Shown here piece by piece: positions 1 to 64,000 of a stretch of 64,000 nucleotides of DNA. Source of the stretch: Asterias rubens (lineage: Eukaryota); contig NC_047069.1 of assembly GCF_902459465.1 (NCBI RefSeq), positions 17,112,001 through 17,176,000 on the forward strand. The letters run 5' to 3'. The notes under the pieces are model-generated. The model saw only the letters and a list, made by a program, of their open reading frames with translations. It was not told the origin of the DNA and made no database searches. A program made the translations under genes and the position numbers. Each line of letters starts with the position of its first letter. Position 1 is the stretch's first letter.

Positions 1-75
1 CCCCCGGAAATTCTATGCCTGTTTGGGACATAATCGCTTTAAACTTGTCGTTTACTTTAAGGGCTTCCTTGGTAA

Positions 76-507
76 CTACCGACCCACCCTTGCATAGAAC
101 AGGGCCCCCGTGATAATTGCAGATGGCAAGTTCATTGTCCGAAAACAGCTTCGATGGTCAAGCACCAAGTACTTCGGTTCGGGCTTGTCGTCTGCAATGC
201 CTAGGTGTTTCTTAATCCTTGACACATCTCCTGAGAGTTTTTTAAGTTCAGCCAAAATTAACTGGAGGGTTGCTGGTGGCACTTGGGATTGTGGGGCCTC
301 TCTGTCATCCAGGCCTTCCTGGGCTGGGTGGATCCCGGTTGCTTCCGGGGCAGCATGGGTTGGGGGGGGAGCTGGATTGGCTCCGGGCCTTCCTGATACG
401 GGGGGAGCTCGATTGTTGTTGCATGTCCAAACCTTCCTCGGCTGGGGGGAACTCGATTGTGTCCAAACCTTCCTCGGCTGGGGGCAACTCGATCTCCGTG
501 CCAGCAT
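76..507 (-). pseudogene. Fragment of an unknown protein with PAEEGLD/PAQEGLD peptide repeats followed by a short coiled coil; frameshifted, probably continues off the window edge
   Basis: ORFs 76..507 and 305..487 encode repeats of (P)PA(E/Q)EGLD in different frames, then LQLILAELKKLSGDVSRIKKHL. No family recognised. Confidence 0.35.
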
Positions 508-560
508 GGGGTGGGGATAGCTCGACTGGTTCTAGACCTTCCTGGGCTGGGGGGAGTTGG
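310..560. repeat. Degenerate ~35-40 bp GC-rich minisatellite (ccttcctcggctggggg core)
   Basis: Near-identical units gtccaaaccttcctcggctggggg at ~425 and ~461; related units at ~310, ~385 and ~536. Confidence 0.7.
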
Positions 561-777
561 GTCGGTTCCGTGGCGAGTTGGGTCGGTTCCGGTGCGAGTT
601 GCGTCGGTTCCGGGGCAGCATGGTGTATTATCAGTGTTTTATTTTATTATTAACAGAAGCCAAAACGTTAACACAATTGTAAAAATAATACCCTTAGTTG
701 AAAGGATTTATCAGGCCACTTGAAAATATAACCAGAATGCCCTCATAATTAATAAGCGGGCCACTTAAAAAGACGTG

Positions 778-873
778 TCAAGAATAAAATAACTAAGATC
801 GAGAAACGCATCATGTTCAAACAAGGGTTTAAAAATTAAACGACCTATCAAGAATAAAATAACTAAGATCGAG
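778..873. repeat. 26-bp perfect direct repeat, 70 bp apart
   Basis: tcaagaataaaataactaagatcgag at 778-803 and 848-873. Confidence 0.85.
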
Positions 874-2989: not shown

Positions 2990-3960
2990 CTGATAAGAAA
3001 GTACCATTATCCAAGGATGAATGAGAATCTAGTGGGAAGGTTGCCATCATCTCCTCATCAAAACCCATCATTGCCTCCTTTATGGTTGACTCTTGCTTGA
3101 GCTCGAGAGAAACACTTTCCTTCTCCAACAGTGCGGAAATCTTTGCTTGTAGAGCAGTATTGGAACGTCTCGGGGCTCTTCTCTCGGCAGAAAGTTGATG
3201 TGCCTTTTGTTGCAGCTGCAACACTGACAGACTGCAGTTTGGAATCTTGGATGATGCAGTAATGATGACTCCTTCCTTCGCCTTCACTCGATACAACATG
3301 GCAGAAAGATCACTTTGATGACAGATGCATCGCATCGAGTGACAGATGGCCCGGTGAGTAGTAGTCTGCATCTAAGGTGCCGGATGGTTCCCTCTACCAA
3401 AGAATCTTGAGGTGTTATAAACATCGGCACCTGCCCATCGTTTCCCGTCTTTGATAGCACCAGCTCTTGGAAGTCACTATTCCCCTCACAAATGACCCCA
3501 CTTGATATCGAAGAGCAAAGCCGCTCACAGTCATCTTTCCTCGATATTTCTGGAACTTGAAGTGCGGGACAACTAGAATCATCCACCACAACACCTGCTA
3601 TTTTTAGCTTCCACGAGAAATCTGAAAACACACTCAGATACACAGCTACGTAACCCTCGGCCCGGTCGTCATAATCTGAAGAAAATCATTCCCGAACCAA
3701 GTCAGAAGCCTTGATCTCTGGGCTGCAGCCTCATAATCACTGAGCAAAGATTTTATAGATGGAGATTTTGCTCTGCAGCGGTCACATTCGGTCGATTCAA
3801 ACACTGCTACATCGATGTTGCATATGGCAAACCTGTTGTTCTTCTTACTAAAACTCTTCCACCACTGCCTCACCTTAACTTCACACAATTTGCAGATATA
3901 CGGAGGATAGATATCTGCATCTTCTACGAAGGCACTCTGAATGAAGAAGCATTCTTGAAC
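2990..3960 (-). pseudogene. N-terminal half of a RAG1-NTD-like/P-element transposase family member (paralog of 48386-52162)
   Basis: EDADIYPPYICKLCEVKVRQWWK, LSVFSDFSWKLKIAG, ICEGNSDF, TIRHLRCRLLL and ALQAKISALLEKESVSL align in order with THPPFLCHNCFKKLDLW, LSIFNDVSWRVDVCG, VCTGNGDY, TIRHRKCSLLV and ALQEKVRLMIEGDSITL of the 628-aa ORF. Confidence 0.8.
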
Positions 3961-5245
3961 CTGTCAGCACAAACAAATATTTGTTATTTTTATAATAGTA
4001 AATGATAGTTAATGTTTGATTTAAATTTGCACTTAATTTAGTAACAAAATCTTTATCTATTCCCAAACCCAAATTGGCCCATGCACAAGGGCTAACAACA
4101 CCAAGGAGAGCTTTAAAATTAGTTTAAAAAGCAGTGACTTCACGAGCGAGGGGTGAGGGAAATTAAATATGAACTTAATTAAAAAGAAAACGTAGAAATA
4201 AAACAGAATATTAATCTCGTAAAACTAAAAGTTGTACTAAATAGTGTCTATTAAAATTAAAAATTAAAATAATGGGTTTTTTTTGTAAGGCATAGTCAAT
4301 TGGTAGGGAGATGGGGAGGTCCAGACTGTGTAGAGAAATATTATAAATGCACACTGCACTGGTGAGGCACATAAACAAAAACAACCAAACTAAAATCGAA
4401 ATAATTCTTTAAAATCATACAAATTATTTTTAAAATGGTTGGACAAGCCCCCCAAAAAAACGAGTGGACATGAAAGACCTCTGAATCTGATAATCTTACC
4501 TATCCTACCCAAACTAAAAAACGAATAACACTAGGTTTATGAATTAAAATCCAAGTTAAAAAAGTAACATATCAAAAATATAAGTTCCCATATTAACAAC
4601 ATTAAAAGCGATAAATCGATGGTTAAAAAAAAAAATCCCATAACTTTTGTGTTAAAAAATCGTAAAGAGTTGAGCATCCTCATATCAGAAAGAACAAGGA
4701 CGTATGCTTCTAAAAATACCAATTTCCAACGCCGACGAACACCGGAACACCCTGAAAACCCATTTTTAATATTATCATAATATATAGTATTTCATACTTT
4801 ATCCAGAATTGTAATCATGTACTAACCTTGGTGGAAAAGGTCGAAAATTTTCGATCAAAACATTGTTGCAATCAGAATTTCACGCAGAATCGTTTGGAAA
4901 AGATGGCGCATAGAAAAGCGGCTTGTAAACACTACTGCGCATGTGAAAACTGGTTGTTTTTTGATTGTATGTGCAGATCATGTTTACTCCAGTATTGCTT
5001 GAACGATGACATATGCGTGTCCTGTGAACGAGATCGCGGCACTGGACACTGCACACAGAAGACGTTATCGCGGTCGTAAACCTGGTGAGCTCAGCCAGTG
5101 GCCCCATAGGTTTAGTGCAGGATAGCCAAAGGCGCTAATGGGATTAATTGGCTGTGGTTTTTCGTTCCAACTCCTTCTAATTCAACCTCCATGCTGTAAC
5201 TACCCGTTTTTCTTTTCCATTAAACTTGTGTAGAATATATACAAA

Positions 5246-6540
5246 TTGCGCTTCTGACTCTCAGCATTCTGTGGCCCTTATCCCATACTTTTGACTCTGT
5301 GTCGGCTCACAGTTTTCCTTGGCTTTCCGTGTAACAAAGGCACCAGTCGGCATATTTTGCAACAAAGCCAATTACCTTTTTGCATAATTTGTCGCCCCCT
5401 CTTATATGTTTTTTTTCTTCATGAGACCTATGAAAAACTATAGACGGGCCACCATCGATATTCTTTTTCATCACATAGTACAAATCTTTGTTTTTGCTGT
5501 CAATGAGGGAAAAATATGTGTTGTCGAACAAAGTCGAAAATAAGTAGCGCAGTGAAAGACCAGGTACAGATATGGCACACTTACACTGTAAACATATCCA
5601 TGCTGTGTTGTTCCTAGAACTCAAAACGTTTTGGCAACAGCACTCAAAAATGGAACCATGTCCAAATTATTGGACCAAACCATATTCCCGCAAAGTTTGC
5701 ACTCTATCACCTACACACTTTTAAAACAATCCTTTTGTCTGTATTGGATCACTTGGTATATATGTGTTGTACTTCAATTCCAATGGATAAGTACCACTGG
5801 AGAAGAGGAGTCGCCAAAAAAAAAAAAAAAATTCCCCAAACATACTCCCTATTAAACTCTTATAAGGAGTCTTCAGGAGACCTTCCCGCTCTGCATTATC
5901 TTGCATATGATCACCGATATTATTTATACTGATATAAGCATTTTTGAAGATTGGTGTCATTTCTTCAAACACTTCTTTTAATGCTGGATGAACATGCAAA
6001 TCACATTCTACCAAGCCAAACATCAATCCCTTAACAATGAAATGCAGGATCTCACGGTGGGTCATCCTTTTTTTGTCGAAGTGTGTGGGACGGATTGTCT
6101 TAAAGAATTTTCTCAAATCTAAGTTTCCCTTGATTTCTGTTTCCCATTGGCATTCGGTTATCTCAATAAGGTTATATCCCTGATCCTTGATGTAAGAAGA
6201 CATTTTTTTCCGTCTCATCTTGTAGCTGTGCACAGCTCTTTTGTCTTATTTCATTATAATTTGTTTTGTTGAGGAAGCAGTTGTGTTTATGCCAGAAGCA
6301 CCATGAAATTGGTAGACGGTTTGAGTCTGTTGACAAAAACCGTCTGCAGGAATGTTTCTTGCCACTACTCGTTTTCTTTTCCATTGAATTTGTTTAGGAT
6401 ATGTACACCTTGCGCTTCTTACTCTCAGCATTCTGTGGCCCTTATCCCATACTTTTGACTCTGTGTCGGCTCATAGGTTTCCTTGGCTTTTCGTCTAACG
6501 AAGGCACCAGTTGGCATATTTTGCATTAGTGCCCACAAAT
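5246..6540 (-). pseudogene. polB: Polinton-type PolB fragment, ~1.1 tandem units (locus 2)
   Basis: Highly similar in DNA to locus 1; ORF 5721..6233 GYNLIEITECQW...TPIFKNAY...; internal period ~1164 bp. Confidence 0.85.
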
Positions 6541-7400
6541 TTTGGCTAGTTGTAGCTGATCGAGTTTACCAGAATTAAGATCCCTGTACCAATCATGCTG
6601 TAATGTAGCAGTAGTTCTTATTCAGCTAGATGTAGCTGATTGAGACTGCCATGCTTATTTCAGCAAACCTAGTCATAAGGATGTGTAGTTTATAGATGTA
6701 GCCAATTGAGTTTACCAGAAGTGAGATACCAAATTCCAATTAAGACCCATAATACCTGCACCAATAATGCTGTACTGAGTGGTAGTTCTAATTCAGCTAG
6801 ATGTAGCTGATTGAGACTGCCATCCTTATTTCAGCCACTCCAGTCATAAGGACAGTTTATATATATTATACAACAATATCCTGAAATGGAAGGCCTGGCT
6901 ATCAGTGGCTGTGGCTTAATCATCCTTTGAACAGCGGCTGAAGTATAGGTTGCCCACAGCAACACTCTTAGCCATAACATAGCGACAGCCATCAACTCAA
7001 ACACCACTATGTTCCCATTTGCAATGTAGTGGTATACTAGTTTGGCCAGGTGTGGCTGAATGAGAATGCCACAAATACATGCAAAGACATTGCTTTGATG
7101 GATCATTTGGATGTAAGACTAGTGAATTTTAATGGCATGCTAGTTTGGCTAGATGTAGCTGCATGAGTGTGTCATTAAATAAGGAAACCGATGTCCGTTA
7201 ATTTGCATCATTTAAGATGTAAGAAGTTACAGGTGCAAAAAACAGTCATTACTGACATTACATTTTACAAGTAAGCTGTAATTGTTACGGAGATGTAATT
7301 GTGAACACACATTACCCAAATTATGCATACTATGTTGAAATGTGAATTGTTAGGGTTAAAGAGGTTGATTTGTAGGATAGGTTGGTTGAAACTTAAATTT
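6541..7400. repeat. Non-autonomous repeat module with multiple GCTAGATGTAGC(T/C)(G/A)ATTGAG motifs (copy 1, partial)
   Basis: Motif at ~6546, 6625, 6695, 6794 and 7147; colinear with 8700-10440 and 60460-62331. Confidence 0.75.
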
Positions 7401-8300: not shown

Positions 8301-8699
8301 GTTTCTGCTTTATTGTTGTCTCTATTCGCTTAACTTTGTTTTCCATGTAACTTCCATGAGCTTAGTAGTTTGTGTACTACCCCTGACTACTACATTAAAA
8401 GAGCTGGGTTCTAAAAAGTTGTTACATTTTGTTTAGTCTAGTCAATTGAGCAGACAACAAATATTGTTGATGAATTGAAGAACTACATGTACACTGTAGA
8501 AAGTGTCTGGAAGTTATGATATGAGTACCAGAGTTGCCAACAGAAATTTCCATGAAAAAAAAAACCAATCAATCTGCCAATGTTCTGCGTGAACAATTTC
8601 CAAATTATCCCTGGTGATTAATTTGTCCATTATATGTTGATCAAACCATCTCCCTTATTGTTGTAGAAAATCTCCTTGATTTCAAGATATTGGTAGCTC

Positions 8700-10440
8700 T
8701 GGAATAATATAGGGCAGAAGGTATTTTATGTTGACCTGATGTAGTCAACTGAATTTGCCTGAATTTATTTTAAAATTTGTAAATCTTGGTTTAGCTTTCA
8801 TTGTTCTTGTGAAAATCTTTCAGGTCTTTATGTAAGTTAAGTTAATGTGTCCTAAAATATCTACATACATTTCTATGCAAGAATGGTATTCATTCTACTT
8901 GAATATGATATCAGATTTGTTTTGCCCTTGGGAAAATATGATTTTTTTTTCTTCAAAATAAATAACCTGAAAAGTCTGTGTAAGCCAACACCATTGGCAT
9001 TTGGTTCATCCCTTGTACACCAAGGGCCAAATACAATGCCTGCAGTCTGTCTATGTACATTGTATGTGAGTGGTGTGCTATGCAGGCTAGATGTAGCCAA
9101 CTGAGTGTGCCATAACTATTTGATGGACACCAAACCCCACTTTAGTGTAAGCACTGTACCTGTCATTGAGAATATAGTGGGAATTCTAATTTGGCTCATA
9201 CCCAACTCATACATGTAGACAGATACATGTACATGTGCAAGACACACATTTTTCTTCAAACGTATCTGTAATTACAGAATGCTTGTAACTTGGCTTCATA
9301 GATTTAACCGATCCAGCAAGCAATCAAAATCAGAGATAAAATTGAAAGTTCAAAATAAAATTGTTGACAATGCAAAAGGGACACATCCCTGGTAATCTAT
9401 TTTGGCTAGATGCAGTCAATTGAGTTTACCAGAAGTGAGAAACCGAATTCCAATTAAGACCCATTATACCTGTACCAATAATGATGTACTGTAGTGGTAG
9501 TTCTAATTCAGCTAGATGTAGCTGATTGAGACTGCCTTGCTTATTTCAGCCACTCTTGTCATAAGGATGTGTAGTTTAAAGATGTAGCCAATTGAGTTTA
9601 CCAGAAGTGAGATACCAAATTCAACTAAAGACCCACTGCACCAATAATGCTGTATTGTAGTGGTAGTTCAAAGTTCAGCTAGATGAAGCTGATTGAGACT
9701 GCCATGCTTATTTCAGCCACTCTTGTCATAAGGATGTGTAGTTTATAGACACAACATCATCCTGAAATAGCAGGCCATCAACTCAGACATGCCCAGATTG
9801 TGGGCACCACCGTGTTCCCTTCTGCGATGTGGTATGCTAGTTTGGCCAGGTGTGGCTGAATGAGAATGCCAGAAAACATAAAGAAATTGCTTGCTGGATG
9901 CTAGACTAGTGAAGTATCTATAAATGACAAGCTAGTTTGGCTAAATGTAGCTGCATGAGCGTGTCATTAAAGATAAGGACATCAATGTCCATTAATTTGC
10001 ATCATTTAAGATTTAAGAAGGTACAGGTGCAATAACCAATTATCACTCAAAAAATGAAATCTTTTTTGGGACCAGATGAAATTGGGTTTGAATTCCTTGT
10101 TCATAAAACATTGGCTTGCAAGACACTTGATTTGAATAACTTTTTCATTAGGTTTCACACAAACTCAAATTACAAGTGCAAACTCTTAGAACTTTGCGTG
10201 CCTTTCAACCTGATTTTATCTAAACATGATCTGAAATATTTCAAAAAGTCCAATGAGAGCCAAATCAAGATTTCAAGAGGGCTTAGACGCTCCCATTCAT
10301 CATACAATTGAAGAAGACTTGGTTATTTTTGACTGAGGCAATTATATGCCTTCCAAGGATACGATTGTGGATCCAGCGGCAATTTATTCTTAGTTGAAGG
10401 AATAAGTGTCGTTGAATCTTGCTTAGGCACATTAATCAGT
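8700..10440. repeat. Non-autonomous repeat module with GCTAGATGTAGC motif array (copy 2); TTAA-flanked end
   Basis: Seven to eight motif copies between ~8736 and ~9960; ends ggaataagtgtcgttgaatcttgcttaggcacattaa, like 62290-62326. Another partial end at ~10742-10830. Confidence 0.75.
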
Positions 10441-10523
10441 AAAATGTATGGGTGCTCGGCAGACTCCTTTTGATCTGCCATCAATTGCACTCAATATTTT
10501 GAGTAGGAGCACCAGTGGTGGGA

Positions 10524-10699
10524 CAGGCCTGATACTTCACGGAGGCAACGAAGGCAATTGCCTCCGTTGCCCCTGGTCATTGCCTTGGTGCCCGTGAAAT
10601 GCCACAGTAGAAATTTACAATCCCTTATAGGTTGCCCTTTACCTAGGAGAAAATGCCTTGGTCCCCTTGCCCTTTCAAAAAAGGAAGCATACAGGCCTG
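10524..10699. mobile_element. MITE with CAGGCCTG termini (hAT-like)
   Basis: Starts caggcctga and ends tacaggcctg; gtggga is duplicated on both flanks (6 bp, or 8 bp tggtggga if the ends are shifted). Confidence 0.7.
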
Positions 10700-11789
10700 G
10701 TGGGATCAACGAAATTTAAGGAGTGGTTTACTGTGAGATATTTAACAATTCCTGACTGAGGCAATGATAGGCTTTCCAACAGTCCGATATGATTGTGGAT
10801 CCAGTAGCAACATATTCCATAGTTTACTGGAAATAATTAACAAATATATATGCAAGTTCAACTGATGAGTCATGAATTTGACGAAAGGGCAATTAGCAGC
10901 ATTCAAGGTTAACAACAAAAAAACAGACAATTTATGGCATTCTTGTCATATTTTTCCATATTTTTCAAACTGAAAAAAAAACTACCACTCAATAAGTTTG
11001 TATAATTTGAAGAAATTGTAGCAGCCCAAAATTTAAAGGGCTTAACAAGCTGCTGATTGGCCTCTTGAACAGTGTATACTGATGTTCAATTTATTTGTTT
11101 AACTAAGTTAATAACAAACCTTATTTCTATGGAAAGTGCAAAATATGGAGACTGCAAGCTTAGACTGATGAGGGAAACCTCTTGCCCAGTACAGTGGATG
11201 TAATACCTGCTGAAACCAATTGGCAGCAAAGTGACTGTTTAAACTCTGTAATAATTGATACCAGAGCTTAGTGACATATTTCAGTGTAGGTCAAAATATT
11301 GTATAAATGCAATTTACATAATCCCCCCCCCCCTATCACTTCTGCAAAAATGAATAATTTATTGTTGACCAGTGGTTTTTATAGTAATGTTTTCTCCACT
11401 TATCGTACATGAAGGAAACAAAATGTAAGACATCCTAATAATTTTTTTTTAATTTGTAAAATTTGTAAAAGTGTACACAGTGCATTTTTCCAATGATGTT
11501 TATCATCCATTTTCATGATGTGTATCGTCCGTTTTCATGATGTTTAGGGACCCAAGACAGGGTCAAAGGTGAAGAAGAGGTTTCATCATTCCAAAGGTGC
11601 TGTTACTCATCAATGGTTTGAAAGACTTTAAATCAGATAGGAGCATTTAGACCAAGAGGATTACACTGAGAGGTGCAATCGATCCAGACTTGAAGGTATT
11701 CGGGGATTACGATTCATATGAAAACTTTTATTTTTAGCAAGTAGATACACACTGTTATCACAAACATATTGATACCTGACCATGCAATG

Positions 11790-12129
11790 CCTCAAATCCT
11801 ATATTTTATTTTCTACTTTATTATATGATTAAAAAATATATCAATGGGTGCGTTCGTTTAGCTTCCCTGGGTCACCCCCCGTGTGAGGTTTTTTTTTTTT
11901 CCCAGGACGAATGTGGGTTATTATTTGCACACGTTCGTCCTGGAAAAAAAAAACCCACACACCGGGGTCGACCCAGGGAAGCTAAACGAACGCACCCATT
12001 ATAAACCAAAAGGGAAACTCACTGGGTAAATTTTTATGTGATATTTTGGACTTGTAAAAAGAATTGACTAGAGTGGGATTTGAACCAACGACCTCCAGAT
12101 TAATGTGCCGGCGCTCTACCAACTGAGCT
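11790..12129 (-). mobile_element. tRNA-derived SINE, interrupted by a MITE; truncated second copy at ~12150-12310
   Basis: Minus-strand head agctcagttggtagagcg (A box) ... ggttcaaatccc (B box) at 12068-12129; the body is duplicated downstream. Confidence 0.7.
11846..11997. mobile_element. MITE with long TIRs (Harbinger-like)
   Basis: gggtgcgttcgtttagcttccctgggtc ... gacccagggaagctaaacgaacgcaccc; the neighbouring SINE copy shows the empty site. Confidence 0.8.
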
Positions 12130-52162: not shown

Positions 52163-53149
52163 GGTTCAGACCATCACAACTTCTTCCTTGCAGACCATAG
52201 AGTCCTTTCTCTATGTTAAAAAAAGCTGAATATTGGAAAAAGCAAAATTGAAAACTATAAATACAAATGAGATGAGATAAAAATAGATGATAAACAATTT
52301 GGAAAATTCTGACATAAGCAATATTTACTTGAAAGGGAGCCCTACCACTTCCAGAAAATTGAAGATAATAATACTAATTAATTCAATTATTAATTAAGAA
52401 TTAAAAATTAACGATTAATTAAATTATAAACAAGGATAGGTCCTTGAAGTAAGTGGCTGCAGTTTCTACACTTGTGGTTACTTGGCTCAGTTAAATAAAA
52501 ATAAAAAAATGTTACAAAAAATTTAAACCAAGGTGTTGTTGAATCATGATGACAAACGAACATCAACTCTATGCCTATTTTTTTTTTACATCATGTAAAT
52601 GATACAACGAATTAAAAATCCAGGTAGCCTATATAGCATGCATGACAAACTGTGTGTTTAAAAAGCCTTCCAAGGCGTTTTCATGCAGTATAATTTCTGA
52701 AGATTCTATTTTATCTGTCAATTTTATTTTCATATTAACATAATATTTTTTGCTAAACACCACCCCTGTTTTCATACCGAAACATCAAGCGACCCAGTTT
52801 GTGTGTGCACAGCCCGGTCGGCTGAATATTTTGTGCGCATGTGTAACCTGCCTAGTAATAGGAAGTCAAATTGTAACACAATGGGAATGGCAAAAATGGC
52901 TCTTGAAAAACTCATGAGTTACATCTCCAAACAATGGAATGGTAATAAGGGTAGCGCCAAAAAAGAAAAATTTAAATTAGTAGGCGTGGAGGGAGGTGCA
53001 GGGTACCTTATCCTTCCCCCTACACAGTAATCTATACCATTAAATGTTACAGGTAACATTATCTTTGGCCATGATTCAAAGCATAGAATAAGCAATAAAC
53101 AGTTTCACAAACCGCAAATTCCTCAAGTGGTTTTGGTACTTTTCACGAC

Positions 53150-53510
53150 TGGGAGCACTGGGTTGTAGCCTTGCATATAACATTGTTCTGCGTAGCAAAT
53201 GTCTGCTCACAACTGAAGGTGTTATCGGATTCTTTTAGATGATCATTTGGGTTATAGAGAAGCTTACAATTTGGATCAACATGGTTGCGAAGATGCAGTC
53301 TGTCGGTGCACTTGTCTACGGATAACCACATGTCGCACCATGGGGAAGGTAGAGGAAGAAGCTTTCTTGCAACACACATGTTATCAACATGACACATGTT
53401 GTCGTATACGATAGGCAGTGAACACCATTCACTTGGAGGCAGTGCGGTCAAATGTATTCTGAGCCATGCAAGGAGGATCAGAAAAACTTGAGAAGGTGAT
53501 TCAGAGCTAC
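53150..53510 (-). pseudogene. KDZ (Kyakuja-Dileera-Zisupton)-type transposase fragment
   Basis: SESPSQV, YDNMCH, DRLHLRNHVD..C, NTFSCEQTF. Confidence 0.7.
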
Positions 53511-54309
53511 AAATAAAAAAAGCCACAATTAATAAAACCAAACACAAACAAAAACTCTGCCGCAGACATCAAGTAAAAGTGTATTTTGAATTGTTTTTAA
53601 TCTGCCGATACAAGGCGCTCTTACATTTGGTGACATCATTTTTATTAAAACGAGAGCTTTTCCCGATCTTTGCAAAACTTGTATTCTTCAATGGTACAGC
53701 ATCAAAAGGTGTAAATCAAACCAAAAAGGCCATTAAATAACACTTTTCCAAAGTATTTTACAGGTACTTTCAGTTTAAATAGGTCAAAGGTCAACAGAAG
53801 GTCACCGACATATCCATTTTTGTGATGTATGTCCAGCCCTTTCATATGATGTATAGATTGTCAAAATGGCTGATGTGGTTGATTGAGGAAATAGGAATTT
53901 ATACATTTTGACGACTGTAAAAGAGATTACTAAACCAAAAGGAAAATGTATGTGGAAAACGCCTTTAACACAGACTAGCGCAATCACTGTAGCGTGACTA
54001 TGCACTGCATACTACATGTGTTGTACATGGACATGTAAAATCTTTTTGCACGACCAATGGGGGAAATTTGTAGTTCTTTAGACATGAATTTTTTTAATGT
54101 TCAACACCCATTTTAAACCGGAAGACAAGGTCAAAATGGGGTCAAGTCTGTAAGTATGGGCAACTGAAAATATTAAAAACCTGTATTAATTTTAAATCTG
54201 AATGGTTAGTTTGAACCTAAAGTGTGATTATTAGACCTTGACAGATGGTCTTCTATTACAGTGAGTTCAACATCATTGACAAAATGTGATTAGGTCAAAT
54301 TAAGTCATT

Positions 54310-55360
54310 TAAACAGCTTCGTCCTTGTAGAGACATACATCTTCTTGGTTTAGATGGGTCGAGCGATATACTTTACGAAGAAAGAAAAAAAATTCAAAAT
54401 TTCCTTTAACTTCTGTTCCTATCCTCATCAGGAATCAAAGCAAGGAAATTGTCAACCTTGGTCTGGTTAAACAGGTCACGAGCAAAGTTGCCTGGCATCA
54501 TTAACTTGGGCACTAACCCAATCGTCTCCATTAAGTGATCGTTAAACTTCTTCTCTGCATCATCAAACATGGGTTTGAAGTCTCGAGTGGTGTCCCAGCT
54601 TTGGAAGCAGGCAATTTCACATATTATGACTTTCTTGAAGAAATTACCCAAATTGATGTCGGCATGGGTTGCATCCAGGAGCTTGTGTTTGGGGTGAGAC
54701 CTAAGAACTGGGTAAGACTGTACACCCCTGGCAACTTCTGACAGCTCAGCAGCTGAAACATTTTCAGGGTTGACCTGGAGGTATTGGGCAGTGGCTTTTG
54801 TTTCTTCATAGCTTCGTGAAATGCAGAAAGTGCCCAACTAGCTCTTCGCCGTCTCCTTTCTTCTATGTTGTAGAGTGCAGACGTACCTTGATCCACTCCC
54901 CTGTAAACTAAACTGCCCTCTGCCCGGTCCAGCTTCTCGTCGATCATGCTATTGAAGAACTTCTGCTTATGTTTCCTCCATACAGAATAAATATTCACTG
55001 AAAGCTCTTTTCCGTAAAGCACCTCCTGATCATGCTCCATGCCTTCAAGTAGTACAACAGCAGACGATCTGTTGTTCTCATCCCCTATTGCCTCAATGAG
55101 GGGCCGAGTTATGAAAGTGGAATCAGGTTTATCGGGCTCATACACCGTTACTCTCTCCCCATCCTTCTCCACCTCCCACTTGATGATCGCAAAGGCTGCC
55201 CAGAAGGCCTTGTCTGGCAATAGACGATCCCTCGCTGTCTTGATGATGGAAACAACTCCCATTCCATGTGCCCCGTCCTTCACAGTTGTGAGGATACAGT
55301 GATCTTCTTCAGGGTTCAGTCCTGCCTTGTTCATGCCCTCAATATTAAGTACACTGGGCT
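54310..55360 (-). pseudogene. RAG1L: RAG1-like (RAG1L) transposase core fragment, decayed
   Basis: IEGM...TTVKDGAHGMGVVS (RAG1 ILEGM...VVVKESCDGMGDVS), PDKAF, VYEPDKP.S, IGDENN, MIDEKL, GSRYVCTL (other frame), LDATHADIN, PKLMMPGNFARDLF, LIPDE, LKEILNFF..LRKVYRS. Frameshifts; the region with the third catalytic residue is missing. Confidence 0.85.
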
Positions 55361-55637
55361 TGGCTGTACAGGATCCACAGGGGGATGGACCTGCTGAGCA
55401 TAGTCAACTCAATTCAATAACTTATTTGTCCATTAAAAAGATAAAAACGGAAAAATTTACATGTCAAAACATTGAAAAAAGCTCCAAGGCAGAAACAAAT
55501 ACAGAAATATGTATAAAACTATGATTTAAACATACCCAGCATAGATATGTCTTTGTTCTGGTCGGCAAGACAAAGGGGCACTACTGGAGCCACAGCTTTG
55601 AGAAGGTCCATCGCTTCGCAATGAAGAACTCTGGATC

Positions 55638-55704: not shown

Positions 55705-57062
55705 ATTTATAATGCGCCATCTATCTAGTGTACAAGACCGAAGCGCAGAACAAAAAAAACAATACATACAACAAAAAAGAAATGTAGAACATAATAATAA
55801 AAATTATACAATGAATAATCTACTGTCTACTGTCAAGACATGTAACGAGCTAAGTGTAAGAGGATTCAAATAAATGAGTTTTAAGCAAGTTTTTAAACAA
55901 TGGAAGAGAACTACAGCACCTGATGTTATTAGGTAAAGCGTTCCAAAGTTTAGTAGCACAAGCGGAAAAGGCACGATCGCCATACGATGAGGAAGTTCTA
56001 GGAATAGTTAAAAGGGACTTAGCAGAAGAACGAAGAGTGCGAGAGGGGGCATAAGGTACAAGGAGATTTGCAATATAAGACGGAGTCATGCCGAACTGAG
56101 ATTTAAATGCAATAAGTAGAATTTTGAATTGAATTCGTTGTCGAATGGGTAGCCAGTGAAGTTCCTGCAATATAGGTGTAATATGATCATGTTTTTTAGA
56201 TTTTGTTAAAACACGAGCGGCAGCATTTTGTAAAAGTTGTAGTTTGTGGAGCTGGTGTTTGGTAATAGGGAATTACCATTGTCAAGGCGAGAAGTGACCA
56301 AAGAATGTATGATAGTAGCAGCAGTTTTATGTGATAAGGTTTTTCGAATGGTATTAACAGTTCTTAAGTAATAGTATGTCGATTGACAGATTCTGCTGAC
56401 ATGTTTATCCATGGATAGTGTGTTATCAAAAATAACTCCCAAATTACACGCACAAGGTGAGGCGTGAATAGATGTCTGGGAGTTATAATGAGAAATTCAG
56501 TTTTATCATCATTTAGTTTTAGCTTGTTAATTGTCATCCACGACTTAATCTCAGATATGCAGGCTTTGGCACACTGGCGAGCCGATTCCTCACTATTGGG
56601 TATGTTTAAATCAAATGGTAAATAGAGCTGTGTGTCATCCGCATAGGCATGTACCCGCAAGCCATGTTTACGAGCAATATTGGCAATTGGGCTAGCATAG
56701 ATTGTAAAAAGCAACTGCCCCAGAACTGATCCTTGGGGCACGCCGTAAGGGAGTGGATCAAAGTCAGACAGGACACTAGCAATGTTCACTGACTGGGTCC
56801 TGTTACTGAGATATGATTGTAGCCACTTCAGAGCTGAGCCCTTGACACCAATTGATGCAATGCGAGAATAAAGTACGTCATGGTCAATGGTGTCAAAGGC
56901 TGTGGAAAGATCAAGAAGAATAAGAAATACACCAAATTTATCATCCAGTTCACATAAAATATCATTTTGTACCCTCAATAAAGCTGTTTCTGTACTGTGG
57001 AATTTTCTGTAAGCTGATTGAAAGTGTTCATATAGGTTGTGAGAAGATAAAAGATAAAACAA
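55640..57062 (-). mobile_element. 5'-truncated L2/CR1-clade LINE (RT domain and 3' end)
   Basis: QSAYRKFHSTETAL, LDLSTAFDTIDH, GVPQGSVLG, YADDTQLY, LHWLPIRQRI.FK; (TAT)n tail. Confidence 0.92.
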
Positions 57063-57689
57063 TTAATTATAAAATACCATGTTATGAAACAAAGAAGTAT
57101 GTACATAAAAGTGTGTAGCCAGACGCTGCTCAGATATTATGTCTGTGTCCAGTAAGAGGTATCCGTCACTGTTTCCTGGTACCATTTCTATGCTTCTGCT
57201 GATATCAGATACACTTATTCTGTATACATCACAAGTTTATTTTACTAGCGTTATTGTGTTGTGTACAACAAAAACAATTACCCTTTATTTCTATCCATTA
57301 AAAAGAATGTTACTATCAATGAAACATACTTGTACCCAAAAGTTTCCATGTCAAGTTCATACCTCCCAAGTAAGCCTTGCAACAATGTGTTGTCCAATCC
57401 TGGCTACCATCAACAATGAGTACAGCTCCTGTCTTCCTCTTTCTTGTTAATTCTCTGAAAATCAGAAGAAGGTAGTTCACATGTTCTTGGATGGTCATCT
57501 TGTAAAACTTTGATGACCATGGTCACATTAGATGGTTCCAGTTCTGGGGATGAAGAAATGGGGATATCCAATTCATCTTTCACACTCTTTGGGGCGTCAT
57601 CCTTTCTGGTCAGTTCCATGTAACCACATGGGGTGACAAGATAAGCCTGATCCTTGAGGGAAATCATGACCGGGACATATAGGCGAGTC

Positions 57690-57990
57690 GTTCAGCTGTC
57701 TTAATCAGATGGGGAACATCCGAGAAGAAGAAAACATGCCGTGAATAATCGACCGTACTGAGTACACAGTAGACATCCTTACTCTTGTCGTCCTCTTCAC
57801 GGCACATACGGTAAAACTTTCTGTTCTGCGATGCACCGTCAGAGACCATCGCTCGTACAACAAACCCTGCTGACTCCAACATAATAACAGCATCAAGAAG
57901 CAATAGATAGAGCTGATGACTAGTTACTCCAATAGTCGGATAATAGCCAACAGTTTCTTGTGGTCGGCTGAGGCAGGAAACTACTGGCGG
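57690..57990 (-). pseudogene. P-element-type transposase fragment (fourth piece)
   Basis: VGYYPTIGVTSHQLY, LESAGFVVRAMVSDGASQNRKFY, FFSDVPHLIKT. Confidence 0.8.
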
Positions 57991-58539
57991 ACTTCTGAAC
58001 TTTATGCATAGCAGAATGAAGATCCGTACGATGAATTTTACTCACATCATACCTGGTCTGAGGCTTGGAGATGAGCAGCGCACACAACTCGAATTGTGGT
58101 CACCAGATGTGTCTGAAACAAATCTCTGGGAGTGTTTCGCATTCTCACAACACCTGGTCACGAAATCATCAATGCGCTCCCCATTCCTCTGACTTTAACG
58201 CATTAATTCTAAGTGGTGGACACAAAAATTTACTTTAACATGTAGCTGATCATCAAACAATGCCCAAATTTTGGAGGGTCAAGTTGAGCCTTTTCAGCCC
58301 TTGAGTGTCCAGCTCTGTCTTTTGTTGCCGGAAAAGCACTGTAGCACCCCAGTTCATTTCTGGACAAGTCTTGAGTAATAACAATTGTCCAAACGTTAAT
58401 TTCCACTCCCGAGGAGTAAAAATTTATTCCGGTAACTTTAGCACCATAACGGCTGTTGGCTGATGATGTCTCGTGTTTGTTGATATAGTCGACATGTATG
58501 ATTTTTGACTGCGGAATAATGATGCGTACCATTTTCCAA

Positions 58540-59071
58540 TATTAGTTTATTATGGCTGGCATCATGTGCACGCTCTAGTTGCGTGGCAGTTTTTAGCCCG
58601 TCGGGCAGAGTTGTGGCGCCACATTCATGCACCTTCAGCTGAAGATATGGAGATAAACCGGGGACAAAACGGCGGAACAGTTCGCCATCGTTCGCCTCCT
58701 TACCATAGGTAGAGAATGCTTCGTGCACTAGGCGGGTTATGTCTGCGGCAAAAACCTCAAGGGCTTCACCGGGGAGCCGGGGGCGGGCATTTATGCATGA
58801 CTGAAATTTTGTGTGATGGTGCACAAATACAGATTTCAACTCTAATTTGACTTTGTCATAGACGTCCTTTGTTGTCATGGGCAAACTGTCCCATAAGGTA
58901 AAAGCCGCTCCGCTCAGTTTGGCGGGCAGAATGGTGGCGAGTTGGGGATGTTGGACCTTATTTGAGTCGACGGCACCAGATGCCATCACCAGAGAATGGG
59001 GCCAGAAGATCCGTTTTAAAATAAAGGGAAGGGGGAGAGGAGCTAGAGGCAGGGCATGGAGGGTTAGCCAT
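58540..59071 (-). pseudogene. Ty3/Gypsy-type gag fragment
   Basis: APFSGDG..W.RR (upstream frame), LPAKLSGAAF.LWDSL, R.PGEALEVFAADI.RLV..AF, RRFV.GL...LQ.KVHE. Confidence 0.65.
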
Positions 59072-60459
59072 GGCAAAGTCAAACCACAATACTATGTGTA
59101 CCAAAACAATTTAAAATGACTAAGATGTCGGTGTGGACAATAGTGATAGGATAAGAGTCTCAACCATAATGAGCAAAATACACCGATAATGTGAGCACCA
59201 CTAAAAAAGTTTAAAAGATATACATATATAGACAATAAGATTGGTAAAGTGTGACTGCCTCAATAGTACAAATGCTTTTAAAGAGCAATAATGCAACAAT
59301 AGAAATCAAAAGTGAGAAGAATACAAAATATAGGGGACCAATACTTTAGAGTATAGTATGTACATAAAAATTGATGCGAAAGAGGACACAAATATCAAAA
59401 TATGCCAGCCACTATGCATGAAGTGAGAAATGGTTCCTGACCATTAATTTAGGACGGGTGATACTCTTTGAAATACCATTCACTTAAAAAAATATATTTT
59501 TATTGTTTGGGGCCAAAAATCTGACATAGCATCTTTAAAGCCTCTTTCCAGTCAGTATGAAATGTACCAGAAACTAATGATGAGTTTATAATGTTGGTAA
59601 TTACTGGAAGCAAAACATCAAGGCACTATCTGGAAATGAATCCCTGATTTTCTTAACACAGCAACTAGGAATAGTACTCTATTTCCAGCACCTGGCCTAC
59701 CGTGGTGCCACAGCACAGTGCTAAAGTTGAATCAAGTTCATCCACTGAAATGCTTATCGGAGTACTGGTAAATAAAGCGAAGGCTTCTTGGAAGACCTCT
59801 GGAGTGACTGGTGATCGTATCACACACTCTGGATTGATACTCACTGTCAGTTTTCCTTTGATAGCCAGTTTTAACACCGCCCTCAAATGATCTGCTGACC
59901 CAGGATCAGAGTGCATGTCATTCTTAGTCATGATTTTAATCTGAAATGTAAGATCAAATGAATATTTTTTTTTTTACAAACCTTGGCCTCTGGAATGCAC
60001 ACTTGTGAAAACCAGTTTCTAAGTTAACTTGGATGTTCTTCATCCCTTGGAGTTTTTGACTTCAAAACGGCATTGTTGCAATGGTGTTTTAATGGGCACA
60101 TCTACGAAGCATTGCCAAGACAGTTTCCTTCATGCTTGCCATTCCATTGTCATGTTTACTGACCATCTTATCCAGATGGAAGTCACACACAGGTACAATT
60201 CACATTCTAAACACAATCAATCAAGACAGAAACAATAATCAGTCGTTAAAAAAAATTTTATGCAGCAAAATAACATTTACTCCGACAAGATTGAGAAATT
60301 CAGCATGTTAAAAAACAAAACTTCTTTTCTTATGTATCTAATCGATTCAAAAACTAAATACAACCTGTACAGTGTACATGATAGATATCCCTAATAAATG
60401 TACATAATCACCCTGATTGAAAAATACTGACAGCACTGGTATATTGCAAAAGGTATGTT

Positions 60460-62331
60460 ATGTTGACTAGATGTAGTCAACTGAGTTTGCCTGAATTTAT
60501 TGAACAAAGGTGAAAATCTTGGTTTGGCTCTCACTGTTCTTGTGAAAATCTGTTAGTTTTTTATGTAAGCCATTAAAGTCAAGTTTATGTAGGCCTACAA
60601 TCACTAGAGTATTTAATTTTTAGAAGTCATGATTGGTGTCTAGAAACGATACATGTACATTTTATGCAGGCATGATATTCTTCCTACTTTGGTCTGATTT
60701 ATAGATTTTTTTATTGCCCTTTTTTGGAGAAAAAAAATGAAACTATAGTGATTAAAAACCCTGACAAATCTGTTTATAAGCCAATCCCATTTATGACATG
60801 CATGTCAAACATTGTCAGATTGTACTTAATAAAAGGTTCCTACTTTTAGGGCCAAATTTCATTTCCGTTATGTAAGTGAGTGACCATGCTATTTTGGCTA
60901 GATGTAGCCAGCTGAGTGTGCCATATAACTATTTGATGGACACCAAATCCCACTTTAGTGTAGGCACCTGTGCCTGTCATTGAGAATATAGTGGGAATTC
61001 TAATTTGGCTCCTACCCAACTGAGAATGCCATTCTGAATACATGAACCTTAGCTAGTAGAGGTAACCAATCCAGCGAGCAATCCAAAATATTTAATAGAT
61101 ATTCAATTTGCATCGGGATAAAGAATATGCATTTTGGTTTTTACCTATATATACACCGATGTCTGTTACCTTGGTATACTCAGCACTCATTTTACTCGAG
61201 TTCTGTGAAAAAATCACAGGCATGTTACTTGGGTGGGATGCGAACCCATGACCTTTGCAATTCTAGAGTAGTGTCATACCAACTAGACCAACAAGATTGC
61301 CCGGTAAATCAATCCATAATGCCAATAATAAAATGGGACACATCTCTGGTAAGCTGTTTTTGCTAGATGTAGCTAATCAAGATTACCAGAATTAAGATTC
61401 CTGCACCTATAACGCTGTACTGTAGTGGTGTTTCTAATTCAGCTAGATGTAGCTGATTGAGACTGCCATTGCTCATTTCAGCCACTCCATCTGAAATGGC
61501 AGGCCATGGTCTGAATCTGTGGCTGTGGCTTATCATCCTTCAAACAAGGGTTGTGGGATAAGTTGCCCATAGCAACATCCTAAGCCACAAGATAACCACA
61601 TCCATCAACTCAGACATGTTCATACCGTGGCAGGATATGTACACATACATGTAGCATCACAAACTTGTGGTCGCCACTGTGTTCCCTTCTGCATTGTAGT
61701 GGTATACTAGTTTGGCCAGGTGTGGCTGAATGAGAATGCCAATAATACATGCAAAGAAATTGCTTGCTGGATCATCTGGATGTTAGACTAGTGAAGTATC
61801 TATAAATGACATACTAGTTTGGCTAAATGCAGCTGGATGAGCATGTCATTAAAGATAAGGATACCAATGTCCGATAATTTGCATCATTTAAGATTTAAAG
61901 AAGGTACAGGTGCAAAAACAGTCATCACTAAAAGAAATATAAAAAGAAAAATTGTTTTTTTTTGGACCAGATGGAATTGGGTTAGAACTTCTTGTAAGTG
62001 AAACATGCCTTGCAGGCAGTTGATTTGCACCATTCTAATCTTTATTTAGGATTTACACAAATTTCATGTGCAAAATCCTAGTATTGTACATGTGGCCTTT
62101 CAAACTGATTTTACTAAAACATGATCATAAATATTTCAAAGAGTCCTATGGGAGCCAAATCAAGATTTCATGAGAGCTTGGATGCACCGATTTGAAATAC
62201 TTTGAAGAAGTTTTGAAATTTTACTGACTGAGTCAACCCTGTCAGTTCGATATGATTGTGGATTCAGCTGCAACATATTCTTTAATTCAGGGAATAAGTG
62301 TCGTTGAATCTCGCTTAAACACCTTAATTAG
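60460..62331. repeat. Non-autonomous repeat module with GCTAGATGTAGC motif array (copy 3)
   Basis: Colinear with 8700-10440, same orientation; ends gtgtcgttgaatctcgcttaaacacc+ttaa. Confidence 0.8.
61130..61310 (-). mobile_element. tRNA-derived SINE inserted in the repeat module
   Basis: Minus strand ggtctagttggtatgacac...ggttcgcatcccac (A/B-box-like); absent from copy 2. Confidence 0.6.
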
Positions 62332-62889
62332 AATTTATGCTTTCCCTTATGATTAGTTGGTCTCTTCTTTCATAATTCCTCTACCACATAAGTTATTTTG
62401 ACAATCTGTACATCAAATGAAAGATATACTTACAAATTTCTGCATGACATCACCATGGATAAGTCTACTAACTTTCATTAAAAACCTGAACACCTAGTGT
62501 TTGTAAATTAACAAACACTACATTTCAAGTTCCTCAGCGATGGTCAAGCCGGTGTCTCATTTTAGTGTGTCTACAAAGGAGAGACATCGTCTCCCTACAC
62601 AATACATATACAATACACTATACTAGAAAACACGTCTTGTCCGAGTTCGTCCACTAATCACACTGATCCGCTTGTCGCTACACACTACATGTAGCCGCCT
62701 GGTGCCATGCCTCTACACATGCGGTCTTAAATCCCCAACTGCGCACCTGCACCCTGCCGGTCTGGGTCAGCGTTACGCTCCGCTCACTTGCATCGCCCAG
62801 TCACGCAGCAAATACCTGCATAAAACACATAGGCTAAAATAGACAGTCACATGTCCGTCACATGCATTTCTGCTATAATATGTTTAAAA

Positions 62890-63593
62890 TATTGATATAT
62901 AAAAGGCACAAAGGTCTGACATGGAGGCCAAGGCGGTGTCCATCTTTTTGGACTGAGGGGGCATGTTGCCGTTTCTGATGGCGTCATTTAGTTTGGTTAC
63001 AAGTTCTGTTTCCATGTGGGTTAACATACGTATGGCAAATTTGTCAAACTTATATGAGCTTGGCACTTTGTAAAGGTCATAAACTGCCAAAATCAAGTTG
63101 AAAAATGAAGAAACCTTCTGTGGGCTTCTTGGCGTTCAACGGGAGCAGGCCGGAAACATTGGGGAGTCAAAATAAGGAAACGGTCTAACAGCCCTTGGCC
63201 TTCATCCATTGTCACCAGCAACTTCGTGAGTGGTTGAACTTGGGTGCTTCTGAATATGGAGAAGGGGGTTCCAGCTGGTATTTTCCTATCTTTCTGGGTA
63301 CCTAGAGTTTGCAAAGCTTCCTCTCAAGAGAAGAGGTCACAGAACAGTGAGTCTGTATTATTAGGGCCGTCGTCTGTCTTGATCAGTTTGGAAATGACAT
63401 CATAAATTTCTGCCGACAACAAAAAGCTTTTTTTGTCACTTGATAATTTGTTGAACAGTCCGAAGGGAGTTGCTTTCTCAATGAGAAATGAAATTAGTTT
63501 CTTGTCATCCATCAGTTGGTCTCGAGGCACCAATCTTGATGGCTTGGGAAAGTCTGAAGCTGGTCCTGAAACTATGGGATTGTGTACTGCCAT
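62890..63593 (-). pseudogene. DUF3987/YfjI-like P-loop ATPase (helicase-like) fragment
   Basis: Frameshifted GPAS..(K)SQAI, LLSAEI, LFCDLFS, PFSIF.STQ.QPL, GQGLLDRFL...P. Confidence 0.55.
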
Positions 63594-64000
63594 GGCTTAG
63601 AACTGAAGCCGAATCTTCAATTTCCATAATTGTCAGAACAATCTTATGTTGTCCATAATCCAATGAATAACACTCAGAGAGAATTTCTCGATTTACACTA
63701 TTAGTTTATTAAATAAAACAATCCTCTATATATGCACAACACTTCCAATACAAATTACGTCTCAGGCTAAGGGTCAGTATGACTATGTACTAATAATTGC
63801 AATTCAAATAATAATTTCACCTGGTCAAAAACTGAGAACTCCTTCTTCGTATAGGAATAGTGATTCAGTAAATTGTTAAAACAACCTAACCACTTCCCGA
63901 CGAAAAAACGACAATGAATTGTTATCTGTATTTCTAGGTCCTCGGTTACACTTCAAAACCAAACAAAAATCCAATCACTCCCCTCAATATTACAATGAAC

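Follow-up and report, generated by a model that had tools for sequence, protein, structure and literature searches.

Features of the locus

The window, that is, the whole 64-kb stretch of DNA analysed here (Asterias rubens LR699099.1:17,112,001-17,176,000), contains a zone of at least 58 kb without host genes, in which at least 14 separate coding remnants from at least eight unrelated families have the minus strand as their sense strand (Table 1). The families are P, Transib-like, RAG1-like (RAG1L), hAT-like, Harbinger, a TIR element carrying a GDSL gene, a RecQ-like fragment and a reverse transcriptase, and the remnants span the range from nearly new to heavily decayed.

Table 1. Coding remnants and repeats in the window (positions within the 64 kb)
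Feature	Position	Strand	Evidence and remarks
P-like transposase remnant 1	3012-3927	-	N-terminal half, ~aa 50-400 of relatives
Non-coding repeat family R2	6540-7253, 8708-10436, 60440-62328	mutually direct	self-blastn, 78-90% identity
RecQ/BLM-like DEAD-box helicase fragment	16572-17210	-	Pfam DEAD 2e-13; no gene annotation
hAT-like transposase element with C-terminal Spindlin/Tudor-like domain	17455-25758	-	split by nested insertion
6.03-kb TIR element carrying GDSL/SGNH gene	17895-23927	-	TIR CAGTCAGCGCGCAGCC, 4-bp TSD; nested in hAT-like element
Transib-like (RAG1-fold) transposase 1	26314-28462	-	full length, 1 frameshift; tblastn with 725-760 aa relatives
236-aa ORF	28495-29202	-	no Pfam match
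Transib-like transposase 3	31263-32914	-	C-terminal fragment; colinear tblastn and profile matches 31263-31457, 32564-32914
Transib-like transposase 2	33805-35956	-	full length with frameshifts; 25-47% aa identity to copy 1
P-like remnant 2	36124-37935	-	aa ~212-775; Pfam TNP-like_RNaseH_N 6e-19; tblastn
hAT-like fragment 2	38900-39516	-	profile match
1.2-kb tandem repeat R1	39505-42052		self-blastn
Harbinger Myb/SANT partner gene	42347-44543	+	annotated, 303 aa, in L001; Pfam Myb_DNA-bind_4 1.7e-12
Harbinger/PIF DDE transposase gene	46233-47597	-	annotated, 356 aa; Pfam DDE_Tnp_4 4e-33
P-like element 3	48356-52165	-	Pfam TNP-like RNaseH_N 4e-24, RNaseH_C 8e-10; tblastn
RAG1-like (ProtoRAG-type) remnant	54409-55403	-	Pfam RAG1 1.5e-8 and 8e-11; amphioxus RAG1L 6b40 3e-25
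Reverse-transcriptase remnant	55853-57062	-	Pfam RVT_1 1.9e-22 on 56367-57062; adjacent minus ORFs
P-like fragment 4	57613-57984	-	Pfam TNP-like_RNaseH_N 4e-6; tblastn

P-like remnant 1 is 29-45% identical to echinoderm P/THAP9-like proteins (tblastn) and has paralogue matches to the 629-aa P ORF. Remnant 2 holds a 12-bp tandem repeat in 24 copies (36226-36513; TRF), and element 3 is annotated over 49638-52162 as LOC117293214 (698 aa; P0016 is 100% identical), with further C-terminal exon-like matches at 48356-49654. The AF2 model of P0002, a protein 62% identical to Transib-like transposase 1, has a pLDDT of 77 and matches RAG1 (1e-17), BbRAGL (6e-14) and HzTransib (1e-11) in Foldseek. Transib-like copy 3 is interrupted by ~1.1 kb that includes a fold-back at 32108-32364. 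Since amino acid identity is only 34-58% among the P copies and 25-47% among the Transib-like copies, each group comprises different lineages rather than local duplicates.

One young element is nested in another, alongside older, frameshifted copies of P and Transib elsewhere in the window. The hAT-like element's own sequence consists of 17455-17895 and 23925-25758, with profile matches at 23873-25803 and 17617-18189; the model of the relative P0075 (AF2, pLDDT 89) matches Hermes at 8e-7 in Foldseek, and the tail matches Spindlin at 31-35% identity. The element inserted into it carries the GDSL/SGNH gene LOC117293625 at 21037-22443 (Pfam Lipase_GDSL_2 4.6e-12; P0223 is 100% identical). Comparing the element with another of its copies revealed its TIRs, and an inverted-repeat search of the window for the TIRs of Transib and other elements gave only noise. 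A second copy of the GDSL element (L003; 99.5-99.9% identical) is found 2.4 Mb away, at 19.56 Mb of LR699099.1, where it lies antisense in an intron of a 973-aa host gene. Two uninterrupted copies of the hAT-like element (L004 and L005), 97.8-99.5% identical to that of the window, both contain the empty site of the insertion.

The top PDB sequence matches of the RecQ-like fragment are BLM and RecQ (2e-5). A recent segmental duplication of hAT-like fragment 2 accounts for the hAT-like piece at 41448-41906, which is not counted separately: both pieces begin at position 462 of the A4 profile, and 39210-39661 is 97.8% identical to 41599-42052. Further R1 arrays occur at 1497-2860 and 5199-6540, all direct to the array in Table 1 and 93-98% identical (self-blastn). 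The window also retains fold-backs and palindromic MITEs. Other minus-strand ORFs of at least 140 aa bear no family label (884-1372, 47780-48286, 53146-53568 and 58441-59091); PDB sequence searches of unlabelled ORFs returned nothing, or weak chromo-barrel-like matches (0.006). ENA contigs with identical ORFs were rejected as transcripts, as they are marine metagenome DNA.

The original prediction, made from the letters alone, had assigned more families. Its four P and three Transib-like remnants, RAG1L, the hAT-like transposase with a Tudor/Spindlin tail, the RecQ-like fragment, the SGNH/GDSL gene, the Harbinger element with its Myb partner and one reverse transcriptase were recovered. PolB, KDZ, DUF3987, Sola1, Gypsy gag and a second LINE found no Pfam support at E<=0.01 in nearly all ORFs of at least 80 aa, and its SINEs were not reproduced, as tRNA and Rfam scans of the window gave no matches.

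Strand bias

The extreme minus-strand bias that had been claimed for these unrelated remnants is borne out. At a threshold of 150 aa, the window has 28 stop-to-stop ORFs on the minus strand against 4 on the plus strand; the figures are 14 and 0 at 200 aa, and 6 and 0 at 300 aa. A first-order Markov simulation gives a chance expectation of ~0.5 ORFs of at least 150 aa per strand. Plus-strand ORFs of at least 100 aa that do not shadow a minus-strand ORF number ~10, against 11 for the simulated plus-strand total. All 12 Pfam-positive minus-strand ORFs are of transposon type, and the sole Pfam-positive ORF on the plus strand (Myb_DNA-bind_4, 42083-42676) belongs to the Harbinger element's partner gene, the only plus-strand coding feature of the window and one of the two exceptions named beforehand. 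The plus-strand Pfam scan took in 30 of the 31 ORFs of at least 100 aa, together with shorter ORFs, 31 in the 80-100 aa range and 38 in the 60-80 aa range; no other domain appeared in the scanned ORFs of at least 60 aa, which rules out hidden plus-strand genes or remnants among them. A compositional artefact is likewise ruled out, as the long minus-strand ORFs hold real transposase domains and far exceed the simulated number.

Copies within the window point the same way. All but one of 133 paralogue matches in a window-against-window tblastn share the strand of the query, and the lone opposite-strand match is the fold-back at 31912-32365. Where dispersed DNA repeats are separated by more than 3 kb, 23 pairs are direct (7523 bp) and one is inverted (44 bp). 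Homology-supported, separately inserted coding remnants stand at 14 to 0 (two-sided binomial p ~1e-4), and p falls to ~8e-6 once two non-coding repeat families are included, which contribute four more comparisons; these p values carry some selection effect, because the window was picked by a scan. The bias begins at ~0.9 kb and is still present at 59 kb, and the window contains no boundary to it. By three independent measures (ORF length, homology and copies), minus-strand co-orientation is thus confirmed as real.

Gene annotation and transcription signals

As predicted, no host gene is visible: NCBI protein-coding annotation over 11.0-32.4 kb and 39.6-62.2 kb of the window holds four transposon genes only and no gene spanning the region. 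A spanning gene does appear in the annotation where one exists, as at L003. Look-ups of ten window ORFs gave no annotated gene near the window ends. A CpG-island search of the window found nothing convincing, and no promoter-like island or cluster boundary. The plus strand shows no clear shortage of polyadenylation signals (AATAAA, 56 plus against 82 minus, z -2.2; AWTAAA, 112 against 126), and poly-A and poly-T runs, 11 of each, carry no information on the direction of transcription.

Comparison with uni-strand piRNA loci

In Drosophila, small-RNA sequencing has validated uni-strand piRNA clusters that had been predicted purely by the strand bias of their transposons (PMC10643416). Like flamenco and flam-like clusters, the starfish locus is free of host genes and packed with nested remnants of many families and ages, nearly all in one orientation; those clusters measure tens to hundreds of kb, and the starfish zone at least 58 kb. 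The window has what a flamenco-type trap presupposes, being dense in transposons without a host gene, with many families, independent nested insertions of differing ages and near-total co-orientation.

The analogy is imperfect, because the bias takes in every class and no LTR element could be confirmed. Gypsy elements alone account for the strand bias of flam-like loci (van Lopik et al. 2023, PMC10643416). Carriage of the bias by Gypsy/ERV elements, a feature specific to Drosophila somatic clusters, is absent from the starfish locus: scanned ORFs of at least 80 aa yield no gag, integrase or LTR-type Pfam match, and the bias extends over P, Transib/RAG1L, hAT-like and Harbinger elements, a TIR element with cargo and a reverse transcriptase, instead of Gypsy-type endogenous retroviruses. 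The original prediction of a flamenco-type piRNA cluster is therefore partly supported: the window agrees in the sequence features listed above and departs from the model in that the bias covers DNA transposons and one reverse transcriptase. The host also differs, being a deuterostome invertebrate.

In mosquitoes, endogenous viral elements in antisense orientation are enriched in uni-strand core piRNA clusters (bioRxiv 10.1101/2022.08.22.504762). The likeness would lie in one-strand source loci with antisense captured sequences, A. rubens having one-strand piRNA-like RNAs from integrated parvo-like sequences; the mosquito clusters, however, depend on read-through from neighbouring genes, and Pfam detects no viral fragment in the starfish window. 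The piRNA pathway of A. rubens is active, with 5'U-biased small RNAs derived from transposons and 5'U-biased strand peaks at 29-30 nt, and its integrated virus-like (parvo-like) sequences give almost exclusively one-strand piRNA-like RNAs (PMC6085071). The literature searched held no echinoderm piRNA cluster architecture for comparison.

Origin of the co-orientation

Because cut-and-paste transposases do not choose their orientation, the pattern would reflect which insertions were kept and not how they landed. We put at roughly 0.5 the probability that insertions were retained by orientation within a long non-coding unit transcribed from the plus strand, for which a uni-strand piRNA source is the likeliest candidate. 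The most likely filter would be a long non-coding RNA polymerase II unit read on the plus strand. Insertions sense to its transcript would cut it short through their polyadenylation and splice signals and yield only sense small RNAs, whereas antisense insertions would allow read-through and their sequence would become antisense guide RNA. Among such units, the uni-strand (flamenco-type) piRNA precursor locus, which acts as a transposon trap, is the best known; primary piRNAs read from its plus strand and carrying a 5' U would silence the families represented there. We infer transcription, piRNA processing and silencing at the locus, and the piRNA reading is offered as the leading interpretation and not as a finding. 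The features that would define it are a long precursor read on the plus strand and 1U small RNAs from one strand only.

Somewhat more tentatively, the locus could be the first echinoderm example of a flamenco-like uni-strand piRNA trap to be recognised, with a filter acting on all transposon classes, mainly cut-and-paste elements including relatives of RAG1 and Transib, and not on retroviruses. If so, orientation-selected traps would be an old and general animal genome defence and not an insect speciality. Source loci of piRNAs have been mapped thoroughly in flies, mosquitoes and vertebrates; for echinoderms almost nothing is on record, despite the abundance of transposon-derived piRNAs in starfish. 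At stake are the existence of uni-strand, orientation-filtered traps in non-chordate deuterostomes and the policing of DNA transposons, including relatives of the RAG1 recombinase. A prediction with exact coordinates in a chromosome-level assembly can be tested directly and cheaply against the public small-RNA libraries of the same species (PMC6085071). Should the small RNAs be absent, a new account would have to be sought of why unrelated transposons are co-oriented almost without exception.

A similar filter could operate without any link to piRNAs if the region lay in a giant intron, or in the body, of a long host transcript of the plus strand (for instance an unannotated gene or a lncRNA), from which sense transposons would be purged through their disruptive polyadenylation and splice signals. 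This would be an extreme form of the antisense bias that intronic transposons ordinarily show, and we regard it as improbable, if the best of the alternatives. Such a filter would be blind to transposon class, as is the bias in the window; the L003 copy of the GDSL element does lie antisense in a host intron, and a CpG o/e of 0.58 with an excess of TpG/CpA, a window value without a genome baseline, is consistent with a transcribed region that is methylated in the germline. However, no annotated protein-coding gene crosses the annotated intervals given above, and the scanned plus-strand ORFs offer only the Harbinger Myb gene. Although intronic antisense bias shares with the starfish locus a purge of insertions sense to a long transcript, here the bias is essentially complete and includes DNA transposons; known intronic biases lie far below 14 to 0 and are weak for DNA transposons.

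Slightly less probable still is a mechanism on the minus strand or at insertion: a shared minus-strand read-through transcript, an effect of replication direction, or the purge of unstable inverted repeats. Several elements have long or intact minus-strand ORFs that could be expressed, and the near absence of inverted repeats (one short dispersed pair against 23 direct) would agree with such a purge. Instability of inverted repeats, however, acts within a family only, not across eight unrelated ones, and fold-backs and palindromic MITEs have survived in the window. No eukaryotic cut-and-paste family is known to favour one orientation through a coupling to replication or transcription.

The least probable account holds that the orientations are not independent, whether through one composite or giant (Polinton/Maverick-like) element, local tandem or segmental duplication, or chance among the windows scanned. 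The giant element, which the original prediction had itself raised as a danger and which its PolB at three loci would favour, is rejected by the lack of PolB, integrase, capsid, ATPase and DUF3987 domains in scanned ORFs of at least 80 aa, by the GDSL element's own TIRs, TSD and independent copy, and by the uninterrupted hAT-like element (empty site) elsewhere. Duplication did copy one hAT-like fragment along with the 1.2-kb repeat, and the 1.2-kb and R2 repeats are multi-copy, but colinear high-identity copies are confined to that repeat and that fragment; other paralogues are 25-60% identical in amino acids yet keep long ORFs, which duplication in situ followed by neutral decay would not give. 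As for chance, tiling the A. rubens genome of roughly 0.4 Gb in 64-kb windows would give about one such window at the p value of the 14 events, but the non-coding repeat families lower that value to the level given above.

Strand asymmetry

The minus-strand bias in the window is real. Stop-to-stop ORFs of at least 100 aa number 55 on the minus strand and 31 on the plus strand; the corresponding counts are 28 and 4 at ≥150 aa, 14 and 0 at ≥200 aa, and 6 and 0 at ≥300 aa. In first-order Markov simulations, each strand carries by chance ~10 ORFs reaching 100 aa and 0.5 reaching 150 aa. The plus ORFs of ≥100 aa are mostly antisense shadows of minus ORFs, and the ~10 that are not compare with a simulated plus-strand total of 11. 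Twelve minus ORFs have Pfam matches, of transposon type, whereas 30 of the 31 plus ORFs of ≥100 aa yield a single one, Myb_DNA-bind_4. No Pfam match was found for plus ORFs of 80-100 aa, for 38 plus ORFs of 60-80 aa in the inter-element gaps, or for minus ORFs of 80-100 aa. A composition artefact is ruled out as the source of the bias by the domain matches. In window-versus-window tblastn, all but one of 133 paralogue matches share the strand of the query, a small fold-back (31912-32365) accounting for the odd one, and DNA repeat pairs separated by >3 kb comprise 23 direct (7523 bp) and 1 inverted (44 bp). ORF lengths, Pfam, paralogues and repeat pairs therefore agree with the extreme bias of transposon remnants in the original prediction, and plus-strand exceptions are limited to the two that it named, the Harbinger Myb partner and a hAT piece in the fold-back. 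The bias spans ~0.9 to 59 kb of the window, which has zero N and a G+C content of ~39%, and lies at LR699099.1:17,112,001-17,176,000 (21.7-Mb chromosome; assembly GCA_902459465.3), its plus strand being that of the record (fetched loci, base-for-base alignment).

Features of the window and their strand
Feature	Position	Strand	Basis or remark
P-like transposase, four loci	3012-3927, 36124-37935, 48356-52165, 57613-57984	minus	Pfam, tblastn
Transib-like, long ORFs	26.3-28.5 kb (26314-28462), 33.8-36.0 kb (33805-35956)	minus	Pfam-negative
Transib-like fragment	31.3-32.9 kb	minus	same family as the two longer ORFs
RAG1L remnant	54409-55403	minus	Pfam RAG1; top match amphioxus RAG1L, 3e-25
hAT-like ORFs	23.9-25.8 kb (23873-25803), 17.6-18.2 kb (17617-18189), 38.9-39.5 kb, 41.4-41.9 kb	minus	one very large family
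TIR element	17895-23927		6.03 kb
GDSL/SGNH gene		minus	Pfam; inside TIR element
DEAD-box helicase fragment		minus	Pfam; closest to BLM/RecQ
Reverse transcriptase, single		minus	Pfam RVT_1
Harbinger DDE transposase		minus	Pfam, annotation
Harbinger Myb partner	42083-42676	plus	Pfam, annotation
ORFs without family assignment	884-1372, 28495-29202, 47780-48286, 53146-53568, 58441-59091	minus	
1.2-kb unit in tandem	1497-2860, 5199-6540, 39505-42052		93-98% identity
Palindromic MITE-like elements (n = 2)	11839-12003, 30438-30569		
Fold-back	32108-32364		124-nt arms
12-bp unit, x24	36226-36513		98% identity
Dispersed inverted pair, the only one	53839-53882 / 62380-62423		44 nt, 86%, 8.5 kb apart

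Independence of the insertions

Whether the bias means anything depends on whether the insertions are independent events. Amino-acid identity is 34-58% among P copies and 25-47% among Transib-like copies, and several keep ORFs of 200-630 aa. Judged by these identities, the paralogues are old, distinct lineages; duplication in situ followed by neutral decay would not leave such low identity alongside such long ORFs. Segmental duplication of 38900-39516, together with the 1.2-kb repeat, accounts for the hAT-like piece at 41448-41906, and the two pieces were counted as one insertion. Separate coding insertions (P x4, Transib-like x3, RAG1L, reverse transcriptase, Harbinger transposase, hAT-like x2, GDSL element and RecQ-like fragment) are thus 14 minus and 0 plus (two-sided binomial p ~1e-4). 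At roughly 0.4 Gb, the A. rubens genome corresponds to about 6,500 windows of 64 kb, so this value alone is not decisive. Four further comparisons come from two non-coding repeat families, in each of which three loci are mutually direct, and bring p to ~8e-6, which is decisive against ~6,500 windows.

The insertions also differ in age. No transposase is recognisable in the TIR element, which has perfect 16-bp terminal inverted repeats (CAGTCAGCGCGCAGCC), is flanked by a 4-bp target duplication and carries a GDSL/SGNH esterase gene. Elsewhere on this chromosome, at a distance of 2.4 Mb, a copy (8516-14210 of locus L003) has a different 4-bp target duplication and is 99.5-99.9% identical, so the element moved recently. 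The element interrupts a hAT-like element whose uninterrupted site is seen, at 97.8-99.5% identity, in L004, which lies on another chromosome, and in L005, a marine metagenome scaffold. A very young insertion therefore lies inside a fairly young element, adjoining much older frameshifted remnants, and all share one orientation.

A candidate piRNA source

To our knowledge, cut-and-paste transposases insert regardless of orientation; co-orientation that is blind to class and spans ages therefore points to insertions having been selectively kept. Among known regimes of selection, the one giving such co-orientation is a long transcript obliged to read through the region. Sense insertions would bring terminators and splice sites into it and, in a piRNA source, would also give useless sense guides, while antisense insertions would be tolerated or favoured. 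TE-derived piRNAs of A. rubens are 5'U-biased and peak at 29-30 nt; integrated virus-like sequences yield almost only one-strand piRNA-like RNAs, and the authors suggest that these integrants sit in or near piRNA-generating loci (PMC6085071). Drosophila flam-like loci were found by strand bias, then confirmed by small-RNA sequencing (PMC10643416). Given the retention argument and these precedents, the most likely reading is that the window is a plus-strand uni-strand piRNA source (probability about 0.5). Counting against it, plus-strand polyadenylation signals show no clear depletion in the window, within which no promoter or locus border was found.

Such a source would need a long non-coding plus-strand unit. 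The window might instead be an intron of a host gene. However, protein-coding annotation of 11.0-32.4 and 39.6-62.2 kb lists four genes only (GDSL, Myb, Harbinger and P-like), all transposon genes and none spanning, in line with the original view that no host gene is visible; a spanning host gene does show in the L003 annotation. A single giant element, which the original prediction named among its refuters, is rejected: no Polinton-type or virus-type domain was found in the ORFs of ≥80 aa scanned, and the component elements carry ends of their own and occur elsewhere as independent copies.

Judged by its sequence, the window as a piRNA source would behave like a flamenco-type trap. In flam-like loci the bias is confined to Gypsy elements (PMC10643416), a Drosophila-specific feature, whereas that of the window is not so confined; this too counts against the reading. 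The searchable literature yielded no account of how piRNA clusters are organised in sea stars or other echinoderms; if confirmed, the window would give this phylum its first described flamenco-type trap.

Constituent families

Several family labels of the original prediction were recovered: P-type at four loci, RecQ (BLM/RecQ similarity), SGNH, and both Harbinger components by Pfam. A single reverse transcriptase was found. PolB, KDZ, DUF3987, Sola1, Gypsy gag and a second LINE gave no match at E≤0.01 among nearly all ORFs of ≥80 aa, and no tRNA-like or Rfam match supports minus-strand SINEs.

The P-like gene LOC117293214 (698 aa, 3 exons as annotated) matches the 629-aa minus ORF 50279-52165 at 100%. 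Its 860-920-aa relatives match three more exon-like blocks (49529-49654, 49010-49141, 48356-48637), so the gene model looks truncated and the transposase gene has introns. In many relatives the N-terminus matches the importin-binding zinc-finger region of RAG1 (PF12560). The 12-bp repeat (TACAACTGATAC), within the second P-like remnant, has open frames on both strands.

The three Transib-like loci belong to one family of ~750-aa proteins present in echinoderms. A relative with 62% identity, modelled by AlphaFold (pLDDT 77), matches RAG1 (1e-17), amphioxus RAG1L (6e-14) and Helicoverpa Transib (1e-11), which bears out the original label of three Transib-like loci. This RAG1/Transib-fold family (P0002-P0015) is invisible to Pfam and conserves the motifs SGDGT..GKR, LGGDLKF and CLWCKC; a Holothuria leucospilota member named 'Proline-rich transmembrane protein 1' is probably a chimeric gene model. 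The RAG1L remnant is separate and far nearer amphioxus ProtoRAG RAG1L than this family, and no RAG2-like partner is seen adjoining it. The dispersed inverted pair flanks the RAG1L, reverse-transcriptase and fourth P-like remnants, and could be an old element's termini or two short opposite-oriented repeats.

At E≤0.001 the hAT-like family (relatives P0075-P0222) comprises 1640 representative clusters; with its Tudor tail, it has no Pfam model. One member (structure model, pLDDT 89) matches the Hermes hAT transposase (8e-7) and, in its C-terminal ~70 residues, Spindlin Tudor-like repeats (31-35% identity), which verifies both labels; the tail might tether the hAT-fold transposase to methylated histones. 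At 39505 and 41895 the 1.2-kb unit joins a hAT-like fragment ending at an identical truncation point.

Both TIR-element cargo genes (LOC117293625 and LOC117293708) are ordinary host genes in the NCBI annotation. In L004 (1230-1361) the 30.4-kb MITE recurs at 97.7% identity, inserted with an 8-bp duplication. Scaffolds in marine metagenome assemblies ERZ23498486 (ENA; SOLA22-1 METAG scaffold_29399, L005) and ERZ23498375 are 98-99.5% identical to A. rubens transposons, so these environmental samples contain starfish DNA.
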